Shown here: in pieces, positions 15,163 to 23,529 of the stretch | Position numbering within the stretch: the stretch's first letter is position 1 | How the letters are laid out: each line of letters opens with the position of its first letter | From: Pelomyxa schiedti | Lineage: Eukaryota > Protista > Evosea | Reading direction: 5' to 3' | Length of the DNA stretch: 38,943 bases | NCBI GenBank assembly: GCA_020536535.1 | Contig: JAHLWZ010000952.1 | Coordinates: 1 to 38,943 of the forward strand | Program-made: the position numbers and the translations under genes | Notes under the pieces: generated by a model | Seen by the model: only the letters and a program-made list of their open reading frames with translations | Databases searched by the model: none | What the model was told of the DNA's origin: nothing

Positions 15163-16046
15163 ATGGCGAGTAGCCGCAGCACCTCTTTCACGTTCAATGG
15201 ACCAACTGGCGACACGAGGCTCGTGAAACTGGAGGCAGGAACAACTCTACGAGGTGTGTTCTTATCTATGTGAAGTCTCTCCACTTGGGTTTTTTTTTCC
15301 CCCTGGTGTATTGTTGTTTGAACTTATTCGTGTTCGTGAATACGATCCTCCTTACTTTGGAATTCATTACCACAAAAAAAGGCTCGACGGCCAGGGCGCA
15401 CATACTGGGCGACGCCAAGAACTCTGGGCACAACGTGGAGCTCACCGAGGTGCGAGCCAGCATTGTGGGACTGAAAAAGGACGGCAGCTCGGACGGCGGC
15501 GACTCGTGGGTCGACGTCAACGACGACGACACCGATATCCTCGAGCCCTATTCCAAAGTCATAGCCATAGTAGTCAAGTGCAAGTACTGTGACAAGCCAG
15601 ACACTGCAACCACCTCGGCTTCTGTGTCCGTTGATGTATCCGGGTCTCCAGCCAAGTCCGAGGGGGTCCCTCACATAGAAAAAAGCCCCAGCCCTCCCCC
15701 TGCACCATCATCGACCCTCAAGGCTCACCATCACCACAGCAGCAACAAGAAGGACGTGCACGCCAAGTCGACGCCGCCGTCCGACGATTCCACGAACAAA
15801 CACTTCATATCCGTCGAGTCGCCAACCGACGAGGGCGATTCCGTCAAGGAGCACAAGACTGCCGCCGCACCTGCTGCTCCCGCGGCCGCGGCACCCGATG
15901 ATGGGACGGCGGCTGCGTCACCAAAGGCTGTTGCTGCCAGCGACGCGCACGACGGCGACGGCGCCAAGAAGGGGGGAAAAACACAGGACGGCACCGCTGT
16001 GGCGTGGCACATGTGGTTGTGCTGTGGAAATTGCAAGTTTTTTTAA
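15163..16046 (+). CDS. Hypothetical protein: possible PB1/ubiquitin-like N-terminal domain, Ala/Pro/Ser-rich linker, Cys-rich lipidation-like tail
   Basis: ATG at 15163; one intron (GT at 15254, AAG acceptor ~15381) joins MASSRSTSFTF.. in frame to ORF 15270..16046. Contains acidic DGGDSWVDVNDDD and ends WLCCGNCKFF*. Confidence 0.7.
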
Positions 16047-16096: not shown

Positions 16097-19000
16097 TCAG
16101 TGATGGTGATGGTGGCCTTTGTGCTTGGGGGTGTCTGCTGGTTTTGCCTGGAGATTTTTCGTTTATTACAATCATTATTTGGTAGAGTGGGTAACTAACC
16201 AGGAACTCTGCAAGAGCTTGAAGAGAGGAGTTGTAATATTCATCTGGAACGACAATTACCTCGATTTCACCCTCAGCATCTGTTGTGATATCATTATAAA
16301 ATCTTTTGTAAAGTTAGAGAGTTTGAGGTGAGAAGTAGGTGGGTTACTTAGTCATGCGAGTCGCGTTATCCTCCAACCAATCATTGAATTTCATCATGAA
16401 TTCCTCTTTTTTACCAAATTCAATGCCATTGGCCAAGTTTTGCAGCATTTTAGTAACGACAACCATCTGACGCCGAATGCTAGGGGGTGGTGCTTGTGGT
16501 AGCAGCCCATAACTAAGAAAATACAGGTGGTTAGGGAAAACTGAGAAATTTTCTAAGAACCTCTCCGGTACAGAGATTGCCGTGTTATAGAATCTTAAGA
16601 AAATGAATGCTCCAATTGAAGACATTACGTAAGTGGGTTCTTTTGCTTCGATCTGTTTACAGAATTAGTATGACACAAGACCACTTAATAGATTTTTTTA
16701 TTGTTTACCTCCTGTTTGATTTGCCTGCATATCTTCCTCAAAGAGAGCGGCAACTGATCAGCTGATCGGGAAATTTGGAGCAGGAACTTGGTGCATATTA
16801 ACTTGACGCCAATGGCATTCAGGTCTTCATCTACTTCATCATTCATTTGTTCAGGATTGACCTAATAAAATGGTTAGGTCTGAAATTTGTTTTGTTGAAG
16901 TGCCTCATAAGTGGTTGAAACCAAAGACACAGACCCCTCGTTCTTTTCCTGGTTTGTGTAAAAATGGAGACAAAGCCAAGGTCAATATACTTGTTGGTCT
17001 TCGGCCTCTTGCAATACATTTTCAAATAGCACAGCCAGTGTTTTGAATAGATATGCAAGTCCAACCATTTTGGAATAAAACTTTTCTTTATAAGGGCAAG
17101 AGAAAAGTGCGAGGGGTACAACTTTAAAAGCTTTTGTTGACGAACTGTTCAGCCGGAAAAGTACCGAAGCATCAGTGGAGTCACTTATTTCTCTGGAGAT
17201 CAAATGTAGTACCTATCAGAAAAGGTTATTGAAAAGCTGTGGTAAATTCAATAACCAGTTGCGCTCCTGCACCATGGCGCTCAAAGAAGTAGACCATTGC
17301 TTTACACACGTTCTCCGAGTCAGTGATATCAATAGACGACAAAAGTTTATCCACCGTCGCCCAAGATCCGTCTTCAACTTCTCGAAGCTGACTCATGTGA
17401 ATGGGTAGCAAGGACTTATTTTTCACATACCAAAAGTGCCTCTGTATCTTTCCGTTCTTGATCAGAAAGAAGAGACCCATTGGTCTTAACTTCAGAAAAC
17501 CTGATGGCAGTTACTTTGTTTTGAAACGTTGCAGGGATATAACTGATGCTTCAAAAGATCTGAAAAGCTCAGGCGTAGCTTTGCTTTTCTCCGTTTTTTA
17601 AGTATAACAAAGGCAAGAGCAGTAAAACATGGTACACAAACAAGAGGGATAGCAATCAAACCAATAAGACCCAAATTGTTTTTCGTATCCCCACCTTTTA
17701 TTTTGAGATAACAAAGGGAAGGGGTCTCTCGTACCAGATTCGCTTATTTCGGTGTCACAGTTAGGCCCTTGCCAATTAGCCCAACACTTGCAACCGACTG
17801 TCCCATTTGTGTATACAAGGCATTCTCCATGGACACAGGCAACGTTAGAACATGGACTGCGGGTGATGAAAAAGGAGAAGAAGGAGGGTAGGTATGTACT
17901 CATGGGTTGTTGAAAAGAATGCTTTTTTAGTAGTAACAGTTTCCCAACCATTGGTCACTTGCAAGAACCAGGAGTAATTTGTGTCAGATTGTAAGGCCAA
18001 TGATACACTTGTAGCTGTGGAAAGCAGTGTAATATTTTGATAAATTCTCCATGTACTATTGGTGCTATTGAAAATTTGCCCTAACAACTGTGAGGTCATT
18101 TTGAAGCCTCTATGTAAATACCAGTATCCTCGAGGAGTACAAGAACAAAACTGTTATCATATGAAGTACTTGGGCAAACATGGCCCCAAGTCGTCACGTT
18201 ACCCCATTGAAATAGAGTATTTGTCTTATAAGTGACATTGTGTACCCGAACTGGGAACAACAAGTCTGGGGCTATAGGAGACCAGTCGTAACAACACAAG
18301 AATCGTAAATAATCCGTGGTTGATTGAATTTGATCCTAATACATAAAGTTGATATGTGTGAAGTGAAAAAATCTGTCATACTGCATTGATTACTCTCACT
18401 CGCCAGTAATATCTAAATGCAAAGTTTAGGAATGAAGAAAGGTGAAGCAAAAAAGCGGTTCAAAGGAATAAGCAAACATTTGATCTAATTGCCAGTCGGA
18501 AGTATCAAACTGTAATGTGTCATTCTCGTTCGCCTTTTGGTAAATGACATCCACTGCCTCAGAAGGCCAAATGTCAGTTCGTAGAGAGACAAACAGGCTG
18601 TATGTTCTCGAACTTGAATTGATGCATTCTACACCCCAATCACTTAATGATGATATTTGAAGTTTTGCAGTAGGCTCAATATTCATCCCCTCGATGGGGT
18701 AGTTCAGGCTCGGATACCCTGGCTTAGATGAAATGCATACTGGTTCAAACGTTAGTTGGAACATCCGTTAATTGTTACTGGCAAGTATACTTGTAAATAG
18801 CATAGGCGTAGATTCAGGCGAATCGAGGTCGCCATTGGATGATGCTAACCACCAGGAGAATATCCCAGGTGTTAAAGTAAGTGCTATCTGATTTGAAGTC
18901 ACCGTCTTGGAGAAAGAGTACCCTGACCCAGTATTGAGAAGGCTGAAGGAAATTTCATTGTTTTGTGGAGTAAAGCAGCTGTGCCCATAATCTGGGGAAG

Positions 19001-22000
19001 ACCAGGTGAAGTTGACTAATGATTGAAGTATCTTTGCCCCCAGTCCAGGGTACATAGGAATTGGAGTGCTGGGCGCTGCTTGCTGACACAACTCAAAAGA
19101 ATAAGTTTCTGAGAATTTCTGGAGAAGAGTGAGGGAGCCAGAAAGTACTGGAGTTTGGGTACGGTTTCTTCGGTATTATTCACACTTAATCGCCAGCTCC
19201 AATTTCCAGGAACCAAGGGAAGTTCGGTGAGGTTGTATCTATGTAAGTATGAGCTTAACTCTTAACTAGGGGAAAGGTGGCATGCTTTACGTCATTTGTC
19301 ATAACAGAGAAGACTACAGTGGCATTATAGACAAATAACACCGTCGAACAAGGCTTGGTATAGGGGCAGGTCTCTCCACAGCTGGCTGGTGTCCACTTCA
19401 GGATAACAGGTTTGGTGAAGTCTGCTATCTCATTATTCGCCGGTTCTTGTAGAAGTGGAGCTATTGGAGATTTTCGAACACAGACAGTAAAAGAGCTTAT
19501 TGCCCACGGAGTGTAAACAGCACCATTAAAATATCTTATACTCCACTGGTATACTACTGAGGCTGGAGGGAAGGAGGTGGAGTTGTATACAGTAGTATTA
19601 AGATCAAAGTTTTTGGACAAATATACAAGATTTGTAGATGTATCAACAACAGAGAATGCAACAAATTGGGTTGCTGACAAACCACAGTTATCACCCAAAG
19701 GAGGTGCTATCCAGCGGAAAAAGATATCATCATATGACACACGAGAACCAAAGCCTGGATATGTGAGGTTGGGTGCCGTATATAACACATCAGGCACGCA
19801 ATAAGTGAAACTGGTGGAGATTGCTGCTGAACAAAGTCCCAGGGTACATGCAGCCAGTGAGGCAGCGTTTACAACACCGTCAGAGGCATATAGTAAGTAA
19901 TTCAGTTGCGACGTCGGGAGAGGATATGACCTAGAATTTAAGACCAAGATATAAGATCGAGCTTGATTGCATGTTGTTCTCCACGACACCGGCGGAGACC
20001 AGACAATATTGATTGATGGAGACCCGACTAATATTCCACTGGGGGTCATATTTTGTGGCGAGTCTGGTGCTTCAACAAGGCAAACATAAAAGTAACGCTC
20101 TTCCGATGTGGAGTTTAGTACGCCGTTGAACGCAGATACACGCCACCACCACATTCCTGGTGCGAACGAGTCTGTAAGTGTTTTTCCTGTTGTTTCAGAC
20201 TGATTCCAAGTGCTGTCTCCGTCATTTCGGTATTCAACAATAAAGAGCATCAAATTCGTGCCGTTGCACACTTTTCCAAATGACTTGAAGGCTTTCCCCC
20301 ACTCCAGTACAACATCAACAGACAAACTTGTGGCATTGTTAGCAGGTGAGCTCAGCAACGGGATATCAGGAGCTGTATCATTACAAGTGGCTGGCTGGAA
20401 TTCCACGCTTCCCACAGCCAAGCTGCTGCTATACTGGTTATCCACTAAAACGTACCACCAGGTAACACCTTCTGTGAGGTTGACAGATACACTCCCGGTT
20501 GCATTGGCCCCACTAATCAGTACAGACTCATTAAAGACCACTGTGATATTGCACAATGGAGTATGAATACACGCCTCCCCACAGGCAGGTACTTCCCACC
20601 CAAGGTCTACGGTGGTCACATTGGAAGTATAGGGAGACCCCACTGGGGAAAGAATGGGTTCATCAGGGTCCGATAAAATGCACATATTCAAAGTCTGTAT
20701 TGCTGATACAGGGTTGAGCATATCGTTTCGCACAGACAGAGCCCAATATAATTCTGGGGCACTTTGTTGAATTCCAACTGGCGTGACTTCAGTAGTAGTC
20801 AGTTGGGCAAGAGCTATCCAGCTTTCTGAATTGTTGAATGTGGTCAGATTATGTGAGTACCACAATAACAATGTAGGTTCCTCATAGTAACAGTTGAAGC
20901 CAAAGTTGACACTCTCCCACATGAGCTTACTCACTCCATAAATGAAATTTTCTCCATCCAAGGGAGAAACAAGAATCGGAGCACTCTCTGGATAAGAAGT
21001 GCACACAGTAAACACATTTACTGTAGTACTGTTTTGCTGAAGAACCGTGTTGTTCGCCATGACATACCATGAGTGATTGCCAACTCCAACTAGTACTGTC
21101 AAATACTTGTCCACTGTTGATCCAATTGCGTTACCATCAAGAAAAACTGTATAGAAGCCATCTTGTGCGAAGTCAATACTCAGAAAACTAGGGAAAAGGC
21201 CAACCTGTCCCTGGGCAGCTTGTACCCATGCTGGCCGTTCTTTGCCAGGAAAATGTCAGGTTGAAGGCAGTAGAATTCAGTAGGGGGAATAATGTATTAC
21301 TGGATGGGGTTTCCAAAGCAAAGGACCACGGAGATGAAGGTGTGCAGAAAGTGAAATTCCAATAGGAAGACTGGGAGGTGTATTCTTCGTTGCTTGAAAC
21401 AATGTACCAATAATAGGTTCCGTCACCGAGTGTGACGTTATGTTGATACCAGGGTACTTTAACGTGAGATGCAACTCTGCTTGGTGAACCTACTCCCATG
21501 TAGACATCATACCACTGATCAGCAGGATAATTCATGTTGAATCCTTTTCGAAGTTATTCTGCGGTGAAGTCGAAGGAGGATCCGACCTGATTGCTTACAA
21601 AGAAACCAATGAGTAGCCGTGCACACATCTGCCGTCCAGCCTGAAGTAGTTGCATAAACGCAATCTTTAGTTTCGGAATTGAGATTTATTTCCGAAGGTT
21701 TATAACTGAGACTTGCCCCATCCAACCAAGAAAATGTGCCTTCCGCTCTGAAAAAGGATATAAGGCTCTATTTCAGGAGTTCAATAATTACGTGATATCG
21801 TTAAGCCCAATCCAAAAAGGTGCACCAGTAAAAAGCGAATTGGTCACGTTAGTGGCTTCTTCAACAGACTGGAATGACGCCAGTGTCACATCAAGCCCAT
21901 ATGCTTGACATGCTTTTATCGCGGAATTGTAGGACTTGGCAGACTGAACGAGTTGATAACAAGCACTTGGGTTGGAGACATCAGGCCAAAACGTACCAAA

Positions 22001-23529
22001 CCCAGCAGGACAGGAACGACCTTACTTAGTGAGTTGGAAGTTGATGTAGAGTAAGCATACTGGGATATAGCCCCCACTTAAGCAGGGGAGGGTTTTCGGG
22101 TTGGTATGCACCCCGTCCTGGAGAATAATGAATAGGGACATTGGGATACTTTGCTGAGGTTATTCTGAAGGAAAATTGAGATGAAATGTTAGAGGCTTGA
22201 GCTTGCACAGAAGTTCCCTGAACTATTGCTGTAAGTACTGCTGTAACATTCTTTTTGTTGGTTAAACTCTTTGTGTAAATCTGGGTTGATACCCATGTGC
22301 AGGAAGCATCAGATGATAGAGATAGTAAGAAACTTGTTGTTGTGAGGCCACGCTCTAGTTTGGATACTGTGGTATCCCCCGTACAAGTGTAACCCAGGTC
22401 ATATGTGACTGTGGCGCCATTGCAGCTTGTCCCTGTGTTGACAGTACTCCAGCTCAGTGTTACAGTACGAGACTAAATACAATGGGATGAATGATGATAC
22501 TGAGCTATGAGCTCAATTGAAGAATTACATACATAGCCAACCCATAAATCTTCAGGGGATTGTAACACAGGAAATGCTGGTGGCCGTATAATGCAAAATC
22601 TTTGAACAGGTTCAGAGGCAGTTATTTGGAACTCTGAGCATCGCCAGTTGGCAAACATAATAACCATTTCGTTAGCTTCGCACTTGTTGTTTACATAAGG
22701 TAAAGTGTATGTGCACTGCGATAGGTTCTTGTTGTTGCCACAAAATTGATCAATTTTTGATGCCAGGTTCCCACAGTCTTATCCAAATGTTAAACCAAGT
22801 ACCAAGTTATTAACAAAAATTCAAAAGCCATACTGCCGGGACTGGACTGGCAGTTTTTGCTGGAGGAAGTCCATGCAAGAGCCCTTTCCACTTTACGTAT
22901 CACTGTAGGTGCAGTACAATTTATAGTGATTTTTGAATTATTAGGAATTATTCTGCGACAGAGGTTCCTAAGCCCAGATTGTGAACAAGATTTAGAGTTG
23001 GAAATGGGGTACCCATATTGTGGCAATGGTGCAGCTCTCCAATAATACTGACCTGGTCCAAAATTAACTGCTGAAAGATTGTGAGTTTCTAGTTTCCTTC
23101 CCAGAGGGCCCCTCCCCCGCATTTTTTTGGCATACTGGCAGTTCGGTCATTTGGGTTTGAGGCGGAAGTGCGCTGGTAACTGGAAACAGTGAATGGTGTC
23201 AGAGAGGAGCCCCATTCAATTTTAAACTGCGAAAGTAGCGACAGATCTGGCGTGTTGGGCTGGCAGTACTCGGTCCAGCCATTGTACGTCACCTTGAATG
23301 TGATGGGGAGATACGTCTCGGTCGATCCGAGAACGAAACGAGTGTTGGTGACAGATTGGACGTATCCGGGGCACGACAAGCACGATGTAGAACAGCTGGA
23401 TGCCTGTCCGCTGACCGCCGGCGTAAGTAGAGTACCTACATAAACTGCAACAAGCAATAAGATCTCGACTAATGATACAAGCACGGCGCTGTTGCTTCGC
23501 TTCAAGCCGGGAAAAAACGTCCCCGGCAT
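16097..23529 (-). CDS. Type I transmembrane receptor-like protein: signal peptide, ~14 Cys-containing FN3-like repeats, C-type lectin, EGF, TM helix, cytoplasmic RasGAP domain
   Basis: Hydrophobic N-terminus; recurring PxxPxLxxP...W...GxY/WxWxV...FxxC units; CTL motifs FWIGLND, WLDG, DCV, FLCK (~21590-22020); EGF CSNVACVHGEC..CKCWANWQGPNC (~17755-17860); TM LGLIGLIAIPLVCVPCFTALAFVIL followed by KKRRK; RasGAP motifs LFRLNS, FIFLRFY, KMLQNLAN. Confidence 0.85.

Follow-up and report, generated by a model that had tools for sequence, protein, structure and literature searches.

A predicted single-pass receptor of Pelomyxa schiedti with an unsplit RasGAP domain as its cytoplasmic tail, and its family

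The gene and its features

The window analyzed here is a 38,943-nt stretch of DNA from Pelomyxa schiedti (contig JAHLWZ010000952.1). On its minus strand, between positions 23529 and 16097, lies a gene whose predicted product joins a large, Cys-bearing ectodomain to a transmembrane (TM) helix and an intracellular Ras GTPase-activating protein (RasGAP) domain. RasGAPs are regarded as soluble enzymes that are controlled chiefly by being brought to the membrane, and no receptors other than the plexins have, to our knowledge, been described with a GAP of this fold. The features of the gene are as follows.

16097-23529, minus strand: coding region of the receptor-RasGAP (GenBank KAH3743948.1, 1,996 amino acids; about 2,047 amino acids in a homology-guided model)
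23407-23529, minus strand: N-terminal leader with a basic n-region, a hydrophobic core, and the residues AVSG followed by Q; probable signal peptide by hydropathy
17900-23406, minus strand: ectodomain, a Cys-rich N-terminal part plus 12 to 14 repeats of FN3 fold, with introns
21587-22020, minus strand: C-type lectin-like domain (Pfam Lectin_C) in two exons split by the intron 21748-21791
19306-21161, minus strand: large exon with about six FN3-like repeats, in an open frame of 666 codons (19258-21255)
17857-17899, minus strand: FN3-EGF intron, phase 2
17735-17856, minus strand: EGF-like exon with six Cys (EGF_2, E of 0.005, a weak match)
17695-17734, minus strand: EGF-TM intron, phase 1
17600-17674, minus strand: TM helix (LGLIGLIAIPLVCVPCFTALAFVIL), Kyte-Doolittle score 2.61
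17585-17599, minus strand: KKRRK stop-transfer sequence after the TM helix
17388-17584, minus strand: juxtamembrane segment (end of the TM exon plus exon 17431-17500) with a family-conserved motif
17501-17543, minus strand: TM-cytoplasmic intron, 43 nt, phase 2
17388-17430, minus strand: second juxtamembrane intron, 43 nt
16097-17387, minus strand: RasGAP domain and C terminus, identified by PF00616, fold, and sequence
17256-17387, 17123-17212, 16991-17080, 16904-16948, 16709-16861, 16561-16652, 16348-16512, 16200-16302, and 16097-16147, minus strand: RasGAP exons
17153-17155, minus strand: arginine-finger codon (LFRLNS), aligned with FRGNS of neurofibromin
16862-16903, minus strand: GC-AG intron inside the GAP domain, 42 nt
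16593-16595, minus strand: Arg of the FLR motif (FIFLRFYN), aligned with neurofibromin
16428-16451, minus strand: KMLQNLAN motif, aligned with neurofibromin

The gene is present in GenBank as KAH3743948.1, named "GTPase-activator protein for Ras family GTPase." This protein maps to the window from the ATG at 23529 to the end of the last codon at 16100, followed by the stop at 16097-16099, with 29 introns, and along this interval open frames of changing phase encode the receptor domains in order. A second gene model, built independently of GenBank by spliced protein-to-DNA alignment against the paralogue KAH3746119.1, showed an uninterrupted frame with 26 introns of 40 to 65 nt, of which 25 were GT-AG and one was GC-AG. 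Of these 26 introns, 23 are identical in the two models, and they cover all the junctions that connect the last FN3 repeat with the EGF, TM, juxtamembrane, and GAP exons. The FN3-EGF, EGF-TM, and TM-cytoplasmic introns are canonical GT-AG introns of 40 to 43 nt with consistent phase. Furthermore, the window gene is colinear with KAH3746119.1 over residues 33 to 2224, and each of the 10 introns in that paralogue gene's C-terminal third has a counterpart in it at the same position and in the same phase.

The GC-AG intron lies where KAH3746119.1 has no intron. Its GC donor is the only donor that retains the sequence VSTTYE, which aligns with KAH3746119.1 and P0003 and is present in KAH3743948.1; a GT donor at 16921 was rejected because it would remove these conserved residues. 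GC-AG introns account for 1.59% of P. schiedti introns (PMC8887013). Also rejected were an 81-nt "intron" placed by the aligner in the signal peptide and 32- to 36-nt "introns" placed in the large exon. The GenBank model, for its part, splices out 93 in-frame bases (19931-20023) and 60 bases (18943-19002), both free of stops. Both cuts damage FN3-like repeats that are intact in KAH3746119.1, and those repeats score better in the independent model. The two GenBank introns look like annotation errors or alternative splicing, and the true protein probably has about 2,047 amino acids.

The first-pass annotation of this stretch, made by a model from the letters and a list of open reading frames (ORFs), had proposed that one gene encodes a single-pass cell-surface receptor whose RasGAP domain is intracellular. 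It listed about 14 Cys-containing FN3-like repeats rich in N-x-S/T sites, a C-type lectin domain, an EGF, a TM helix with KKRRK, phase-consistent splice junctions around the EGF and TM exons, and an intact arginine finger (at about 17153), FLRF, and KxLQNLAN. The junctions shared by the two gene models bear out the single gene and its phases, and the remaining items hold in the analyses described below. It is very likely, in our judgment, that the locus is a single gene for a single-pass receptor with a RasGAP tail.

The cytoplasmic tail is a neurofibromin-like GAP

The tail (residues 1649 to 1996 of KAH3743948.1) consists of about 100 juxtamembrane residues and the GAP domain, with no other domain. 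PF00616 matched KAH3743948.1 at residues 1737 to 1919 with 81.7 bits, well above the cut-off of 28.3. When Pfam was run exon by exon, RasGAP matched two exons (27.7 and 26.9 bits on the exon pieces) and Lectin_C matched two, and one exon gave a weak EGF_2 match. The best solved relative by sequence was the GAP-related domain of neurofibromin (E of 1e-27), ahead of p120GAP, SynGAP, and IQGAP. The fold gave the same answer. An AlphaFold2 model of the tail (predicted local distance difference test [pLDDT], 84.5) matched, in a Foldseek search, the GAP domain of neurofibromin as solved in complexes with KRAS (6ob2/6ob3) with an E of 9e-14, a target TM-score of 0.87 to 0.88, and a root mean square deviation of 2.5 to 3.1 Å; against 1wq1, the TM-score was 0.77.

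The Pelomyxa domain thus belongs with the neurofibromin/p120GAP class (PF00616), its best match by both sequence and fold, at 28% identity and as one contiguous domain. The FRxNS finger, FLRF, and K-x-LQ-x-AN of this class are all present, as read from the codons and the alignment to neurofibromin. Across 17 aligned receptors of the family described below, from all lineages, the F-R, F-L-R, K-x-L-Q, and FG-x-KE motifs are invariant, which argues for a working enzyme under selection. The GAP is probably active on a Ras-family GTPase. Where it differs from the class is in its setting. The described members are cytosolic and are recruited via C2, PH, SH2, or Sec14 domains or via partners, whereas the Pelomyxa GAP forms the cytoplasmic tail of a predicted type I membrane protein and is its sole intracellular domain. 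In keeping with this, a fold search of the Atlas with the GAP model found only cytosolic RasGAP architectures among the nearest structure clusters. A protein search of the Atlas gave no usable match.

Membrane topology and the juxtamembrane motif

The protein has one internal segment with a Kyte-Doolittle score above 2, and KKRRK follows it directly, as expected for a single-pass protein under the positive-inside rule. The region is a long helix in the AlphaFold2 model. The composition of the two sides fits this orientation. The EGF and C-type lectin-like modules, which belong to domain types found outside the cell, both lie N-terminal to the helix. There are 54 Cys outside compared to 3 inside. 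The ectodomain contains 43 N-x-S/T sequons compared to 23.3 expected, a number that none of 2,000 shuffles reached, and the cytoplasmic tail contains 4 compared to 2 expected; sequons are enriched in the ectodomain only.

Between the helix and the GAP domain, a motif of the approximate form L-x2-P-x4-L-x-F-x2-V-K-x-P (17544-17599 and 17431-17500) is kept in the 17 receptor-RasGAPs, although their ectodomains are of differing types. It may contribute to autoinhibition or sorting.

The ectodomain

From the N terminus, the order is a hydrophobic leader, 12 to 14 Cys-bearing repeats of FN3 fold, a C-type lectin-like domain nested in one of these repeats, an EGF, and the TM helix. Residues 16 to 34 of the leader have a Kyte-Doolittle score of 2.51, and relatives likewise have N-terminal hydrophobic leaders. 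With a repeat profile built for the family, the GenBank model showed 11 repeats and the independent model 14, of which 12 were confident and 2 weak. In the consensus, two Cys are invariant and a third nearly so, and the pattern is P..P.L..P, L.W, G..C, G.Y.W.V.A.NG, F.VC. The Pfam FN3 profile (PF00041) gave no match on the ectodomain exons at an E of 0.1 and none on KAH3743948.1, and the repeat exons matched no other Pfam profile either. Nonetheless, AlphaFold2 modelled one repeat (KAH3743948.1, residues 892 to 1004) as a beta-sandwich with a pLDDT of 95.4, and when this model was compared with the PDB using Foldseek, all listed matches with an E of <0.001 were FN3 or FN3-like, at TM-scores of 0.6 to 0.69. 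The repeats are thus predicted by modelling to have the seven-strand FN3 fold despite the missing profile match.

The lectin-like domain (Lectin_C, 46.1 bits, KAH3743948.1 residues 422 to 523) is nested in an FN3-like repeat, since the repeat profile matches both of its flanks. Its PDB matches, with E values from 5e-33 to 1e-11, include domains of DEC-205, the mannose receptor, and DC-SIGN. Compared with the mannose-receptor and DEC-205 domains, which are the best PDB sequence matches, it keeps the Cys framework and the WIGL core and differs in lacking the Ca2+ and sugar ligands and in being inserted into an FN3-like repeat. Specifically, EIN stands at the position of EPN/QPD, W-T-A replaces WND, and the lectin-like domains of the paralogues likewise lack both motifs. 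Canonical Ca2+-dependent sugar binding is therefore unlikely on the basis of these residues, and the glycan sensing that the first-pass annotation had offered as a possible input is not borne out.

The EGF-like exon gave only a weak profile match. However, its Cys pattern is kept in 14 of 17 aligned receptors, relatives give clear EGF matches, and its flanking introns occupy the same positions and phases as in the KAH3746119.1 gene.

Paralogues and relatives

The receptor-RasGAP is not a one-off. Searches of the P. schiedti assembly (52 Mb in 5,337 pieces) found at least eight loci, the window gene included, at which a large ectodomain exon is followed about 3 kb downstream, on the same strand, by RasGAP exons. 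The seven other loci with the same large exon, at 30 to 54% identity, are on contigs C676, C605, C802, C846, C825, C386, and C803. Each of the eight encodes the end of an EGF and a TM helix, then basic residues, and the catalytic motifs are mostly present at every locus, with one motif each missed by the regular expressions at three loci. The annotated paralogue KAH3746119.1, which is 97 to 100% identical exon by exon to contig C846, is 37% identical to the window protein overall and 50% in the tail. An unannotated locus on C676 is closer, with 54% identity over the large ectodomain exon.

An exhaustive search that used only the 666-amino-acid ectodomain exon returned 68 proteins. Although the query contained none of the tail, 11 of the 13 best matches had a RasGAP domain at the C terminus; the other two were shorter and are possibly fragments. 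All 11 had a strong hydrophobic segment about 100 residues before the GAP domain, as does every RasGAP-bearing relative, and most had an N-terminal leader. The family comes from P. schiedti (KAH3746119.1, KAH3757437.1, KAH3757384.1, and KAH3756518.1), Mastigamoeba balamuthi (m51a1_g9537, g8516, and g11603), Rigifila ramosa, and uncultured sources. The Rigifila members are Trinity transcripts (TRINITY_DN176 and DN372) and are therefore single messages in that organism, and one uncultured member is a complete ORF of 2,045 amino acids with short flanks on a 6,266-nt contig. The other, weaker matches of the ectodomain search had no RasGAP tail. Three that were inspected (P0015, P0017, and P0030) had an N-terminal signal peptide only, with no C-terminal TM segment, and look bacterial. 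A word search with the same exon gave one weak bacterial match, the full-length relatives lying outside its length window.

The relatives share the FN3-like array, EGF, TM helix, juxtamembrane motif, and RasGAP domain. They differ in repeat number, which ranges from 7 to 21, and in additional modules. The lectin-like insert was found in four Pelomyxa proteins only, among the members scanned with Pfam, and the Rigifila members have extra EGF or FG-GAP modules. In a tree of the GAP domains, 14 receptors of the FN3 type formed a clade with support of 96/93, and within the tree the four lectin-bearing Pelomyxa proteins, including KAH3743948.1, grouped at 100/99. The outgroup rows covered the C-terminal half of the domain, and the tree was read for relations among the receptors only, not for rooting. 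The tree mirrors ectodomain type, which means that the tail and the ectodomain have travelled together.

Three members have features of their own. In P0006 of R. ramosa, an FG-GAP domain (an integrin-alpha-type propeller, residues 93 to 275) stands ahead of the FN3-like stalk, EGF, TM helix, and RasGAP, a propeller-on-stalk layout analogous to Sema on PSI/IPT in plexins. P0076, an intronless member of 1,691 amino acids, is encoded on a 73-kb contig of a Hadza human-gut metagenome (ENA ERZ4559773) and is taken as coming from a gut archamoebid, not from human DNA. Finally, KAH3757437.1 (C802:61800-65300), whose tail is 72% identical to that of KAH3746119.1, bears the GenBank name "succinate dehydrogenase," an evident misnomer.

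Comparison with plexins

Plexins resemble the window receptor in being single-pass receptors with a large modular ectodomain, a RasGAP-fold tail, and a conserved juxtamembrane segment before the GAP. In a recent review, they are the transmembrane ones among the six human RasGAP groups (PMC12871552). The window receptor is, as the first-pass annotation implied, not a plexin. First, Sema, PSI, and TIG/IPT gave no match on KAH3743948.1 at an E of 0.01, nor did Plexin_cytopl (PF08337). Second, its GAP domain is contiguous in the alignment with neurofibromin and has no Rho-binding insert, unlike the split GAP of plexins. Third, plexin structures matched its fold at an E of 5e-4 or worse and 13% identity, compared to 9e-14 for neurofibromin. 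Finally, the two occur in different organisms. Plexins are treated as a synapomorphy of choanoflagellates and animals that was assembled by domain shuffling (PMC6374515), and the receptor-RasGAP family occurs instead in Archamoebae and Rigifila.

Full-text searches of the published literature with phrases for transmembrane or receptor RasGAPs found no paper on such receptors, the sole phrase match being a paper on Drosophila Plexin A. The surveys and genome papers examined do not mention such proteins, and the P. schiedti genome paper mentions neither Ras nor RasGAP (PMC8887013). The sequence is thus public and machine-named, and the architecture is undescribed, in protists as elsewhere in that literature.

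A further set of proteins carries the same TM helix, juxtamembrane segment, and unsplit RasGAP tail behind plexin-like ectodomains. One of them, P0079 (C823:10468-13998), is from P. schiedti itself and has a PSI ectodomain encoded by an intronless ORF of 1,640 codons. The two others, P0077 and P0078, are from two uncultured-protist contigs and have six TIG domains plus PSI and TIG_plexin.

Because the same tail stands behind TIG/PSI ectodomains, a historical link to plexins is possible, and these members may bear on plexin origin. The independent origin that the first-pass annotation proposed, which was tested in part, is one possibility beside such a link. In the boldest version of such a link, which we regard as improbable, an ancient receptor-RasGAP superfamily would predate the split of Amoebozoa and CRuMs and would have combined interchangeable ectodomains with one tail. 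These ectodomains would be the FN3, lectin, and EGF modules of the window receptor, a propeller of FG-GAP type in Rigifila, and, in Pelomyxa and uncultured protists, TIG/PSI. Plexins would then have arisen from the TIG/PSI branch by gain of a Sema domain and a Rho-binding insert. If this were true, receptor-to-Ras switch-off would be an old eukaryotic principle and not an invention of the animal lineage. The family may, at any rate, hold a clue to the source of plexin-type signaling.

Proposed function

We propose that the protein is a single-pass receptor of type I in the plasma membrane, about 2,000 to 2,050 residues long, in which engagement of the ectodomain places RasGAP activity, and we consider this reading as a whole likely. 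Outside the cell, it would present a glycosylated, disulfide-braced stalk of FN3 fold, with the noncanonical lectin-like domain looped out and the EGF beside the membrane. Inside, the GAP would be held permanently at the membrane, where Ras-GTP resides. Since soluble RasGAPs are regulated by reaching the membrane and this GAP is already there, its control is most likely spatial. Binding of the ectodomain to a ligand, a surface, or prey would decide where the receptor accumulates or clusters, and Ras-family GTP would be hydrolyzed at that place, so that the Ras patches driving pseudopods and feeding cups would be shaped or extinguished. The specific step of ligand-controlled, local Ras switch-off is put forward tentatively, at slightly less than even chances.

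Feeding, adhesion, or contact responses would be the natural arena for such a receptor, by analogy with other amoebae. For example, the RasGAPs NF1 and RGBARG of Dictyostelium determine how large its feeding cups are and what shape they take (PMC4374526, PMC7416115). The part in phagocytosis or macropinocytosis that the first-pass annotation suggested would likewise be an analogy with these Dictyostelium RasGAPs. In the genome of P. schiedti, the Ras/Rap effector motif YDPTIEDSY was found at no fewer than 31 loci, compared to none for a reversed-pattern control; all 10 Ras-like loci inspected were multi-exon; and about 45 RasGAP loci were found, as a count of the distinct places listed. Taken together, these counts suggest that the amoeba has a very large Ras switch system.

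An unsplit neurofibromin-like GAP that makes up the whole cytoplasmic part would let a single protein link the cell surface to the inactivation of Ras. The family is found in free-living amoebae whose feeding relies on cups and pseudopods patterned by Ras, and it may serve as a simple system for how tethering and clustering control a GAP. The eight or more diversified ectodomains in one genome may serve to recognize prey, surfaces, or other cells.

Several points weigh against this proposal. First, the GenBank model is itself a prediction, and a word search of the protein collection with KAH3743948.1 residues 1560 to 1810 found no transcript-derived fragment across the TM junctions. Second, the signal peptide was judged by hydropathy only. 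Third, the lectin-like domain, with its sugar and Ca2+ residues missing, gives no pointer to what is sensed. Finally, a GAP of the neurofibromin type needs no dimerization; ligand control is thus not structurally required, and the tail could act constitutively.

Alternative explanations

This last point leads to the alternative that survives best, although we judge it unlikely, at about one chance in four: a constitutive, ligand-independent, membrane-tethered GAP. The ectodomain would then be an element of adhesion or of the glycocalyx, and the tail would set basal Ras-GTP or be passively sorted. Once at the membrane, GAP domains of the neurofibromin type work as monomers; the lectin-like domain has no recognizable ligand-binding motif left intact; and there is no regulatory domain in the tail. 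All of this is consistent with constitutive action. However, the juxtamembrane motif common to differing ectodomain types suggests a regulated element, and at least eight divergent ectodomains with conserved tails fit diversified recognition.

A second alternative, to which we give a little less weight, is that the receptor acts on Rap or another Ras-family GTPase and not on Ras proper, controlling adhesion or contractility as plexins do. Two features argue for Ras: the closest relatives of the GAP domain, by both sequence and fold, are the Ras-directed proteins neurofibromin and p120GAP, and the tail lacks the C2 domain used by dual-specificity GAPs. On the other hand, the effector motif YDPTIEDSY is common to Ras and Rap, and the tail recurs behind TIG/PSI ectodomains. 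In addition, GAP1-family and SynGAP-family proteins are dual Ras/Rap GAPs (PMC12871552), and plexins, the sole described receptor GAPs, act on Rap (PMC6374515).

It is very unlikely that the tail is a catalytically silent scaffold, that is, that the protein is an adhesion receptor to which Ras-GTP binds but which does not stimulate its hydrolysis. The IQGAP family sets a precedent, as its domains retain the fold but not the activity (PMC12871552). Yet IQGAP was a much weaker match than neurofibromin (E of 2e-8 compared to 1e-27), and all 17 aligned receptors keep the arginine finger, the FLR arginine, K-x-LQ, and FG-x-KE unchanged.

Least credible of all is a gene-model artefact in which an ectodomain gene and a separate cytosolic RasGAP gene lie head to tail: the missing transcript-derived fragment and some doubtful internal introns of the GenBank model would allow it, but the parts run on from one to the next with no stop or start required, the phase-consistent 40- to 43-nt GT-AG introns sit at positions shared with the paralogue gene, order and spacing are kept in 8 of 8 paralogous loci, the same layout occurs in transcript-derived Rigifila proteins and in a complete ORF on a 6.3-kb contig, and the GAP tree mirrors ectodomain type.

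Neighboring open frame

Just past the 3′ end of the receptor gene, an open frame with no Pfam match runs on the plus strand of the window from 15270 to 16046; it has 258 codons and a GC content of 54%.

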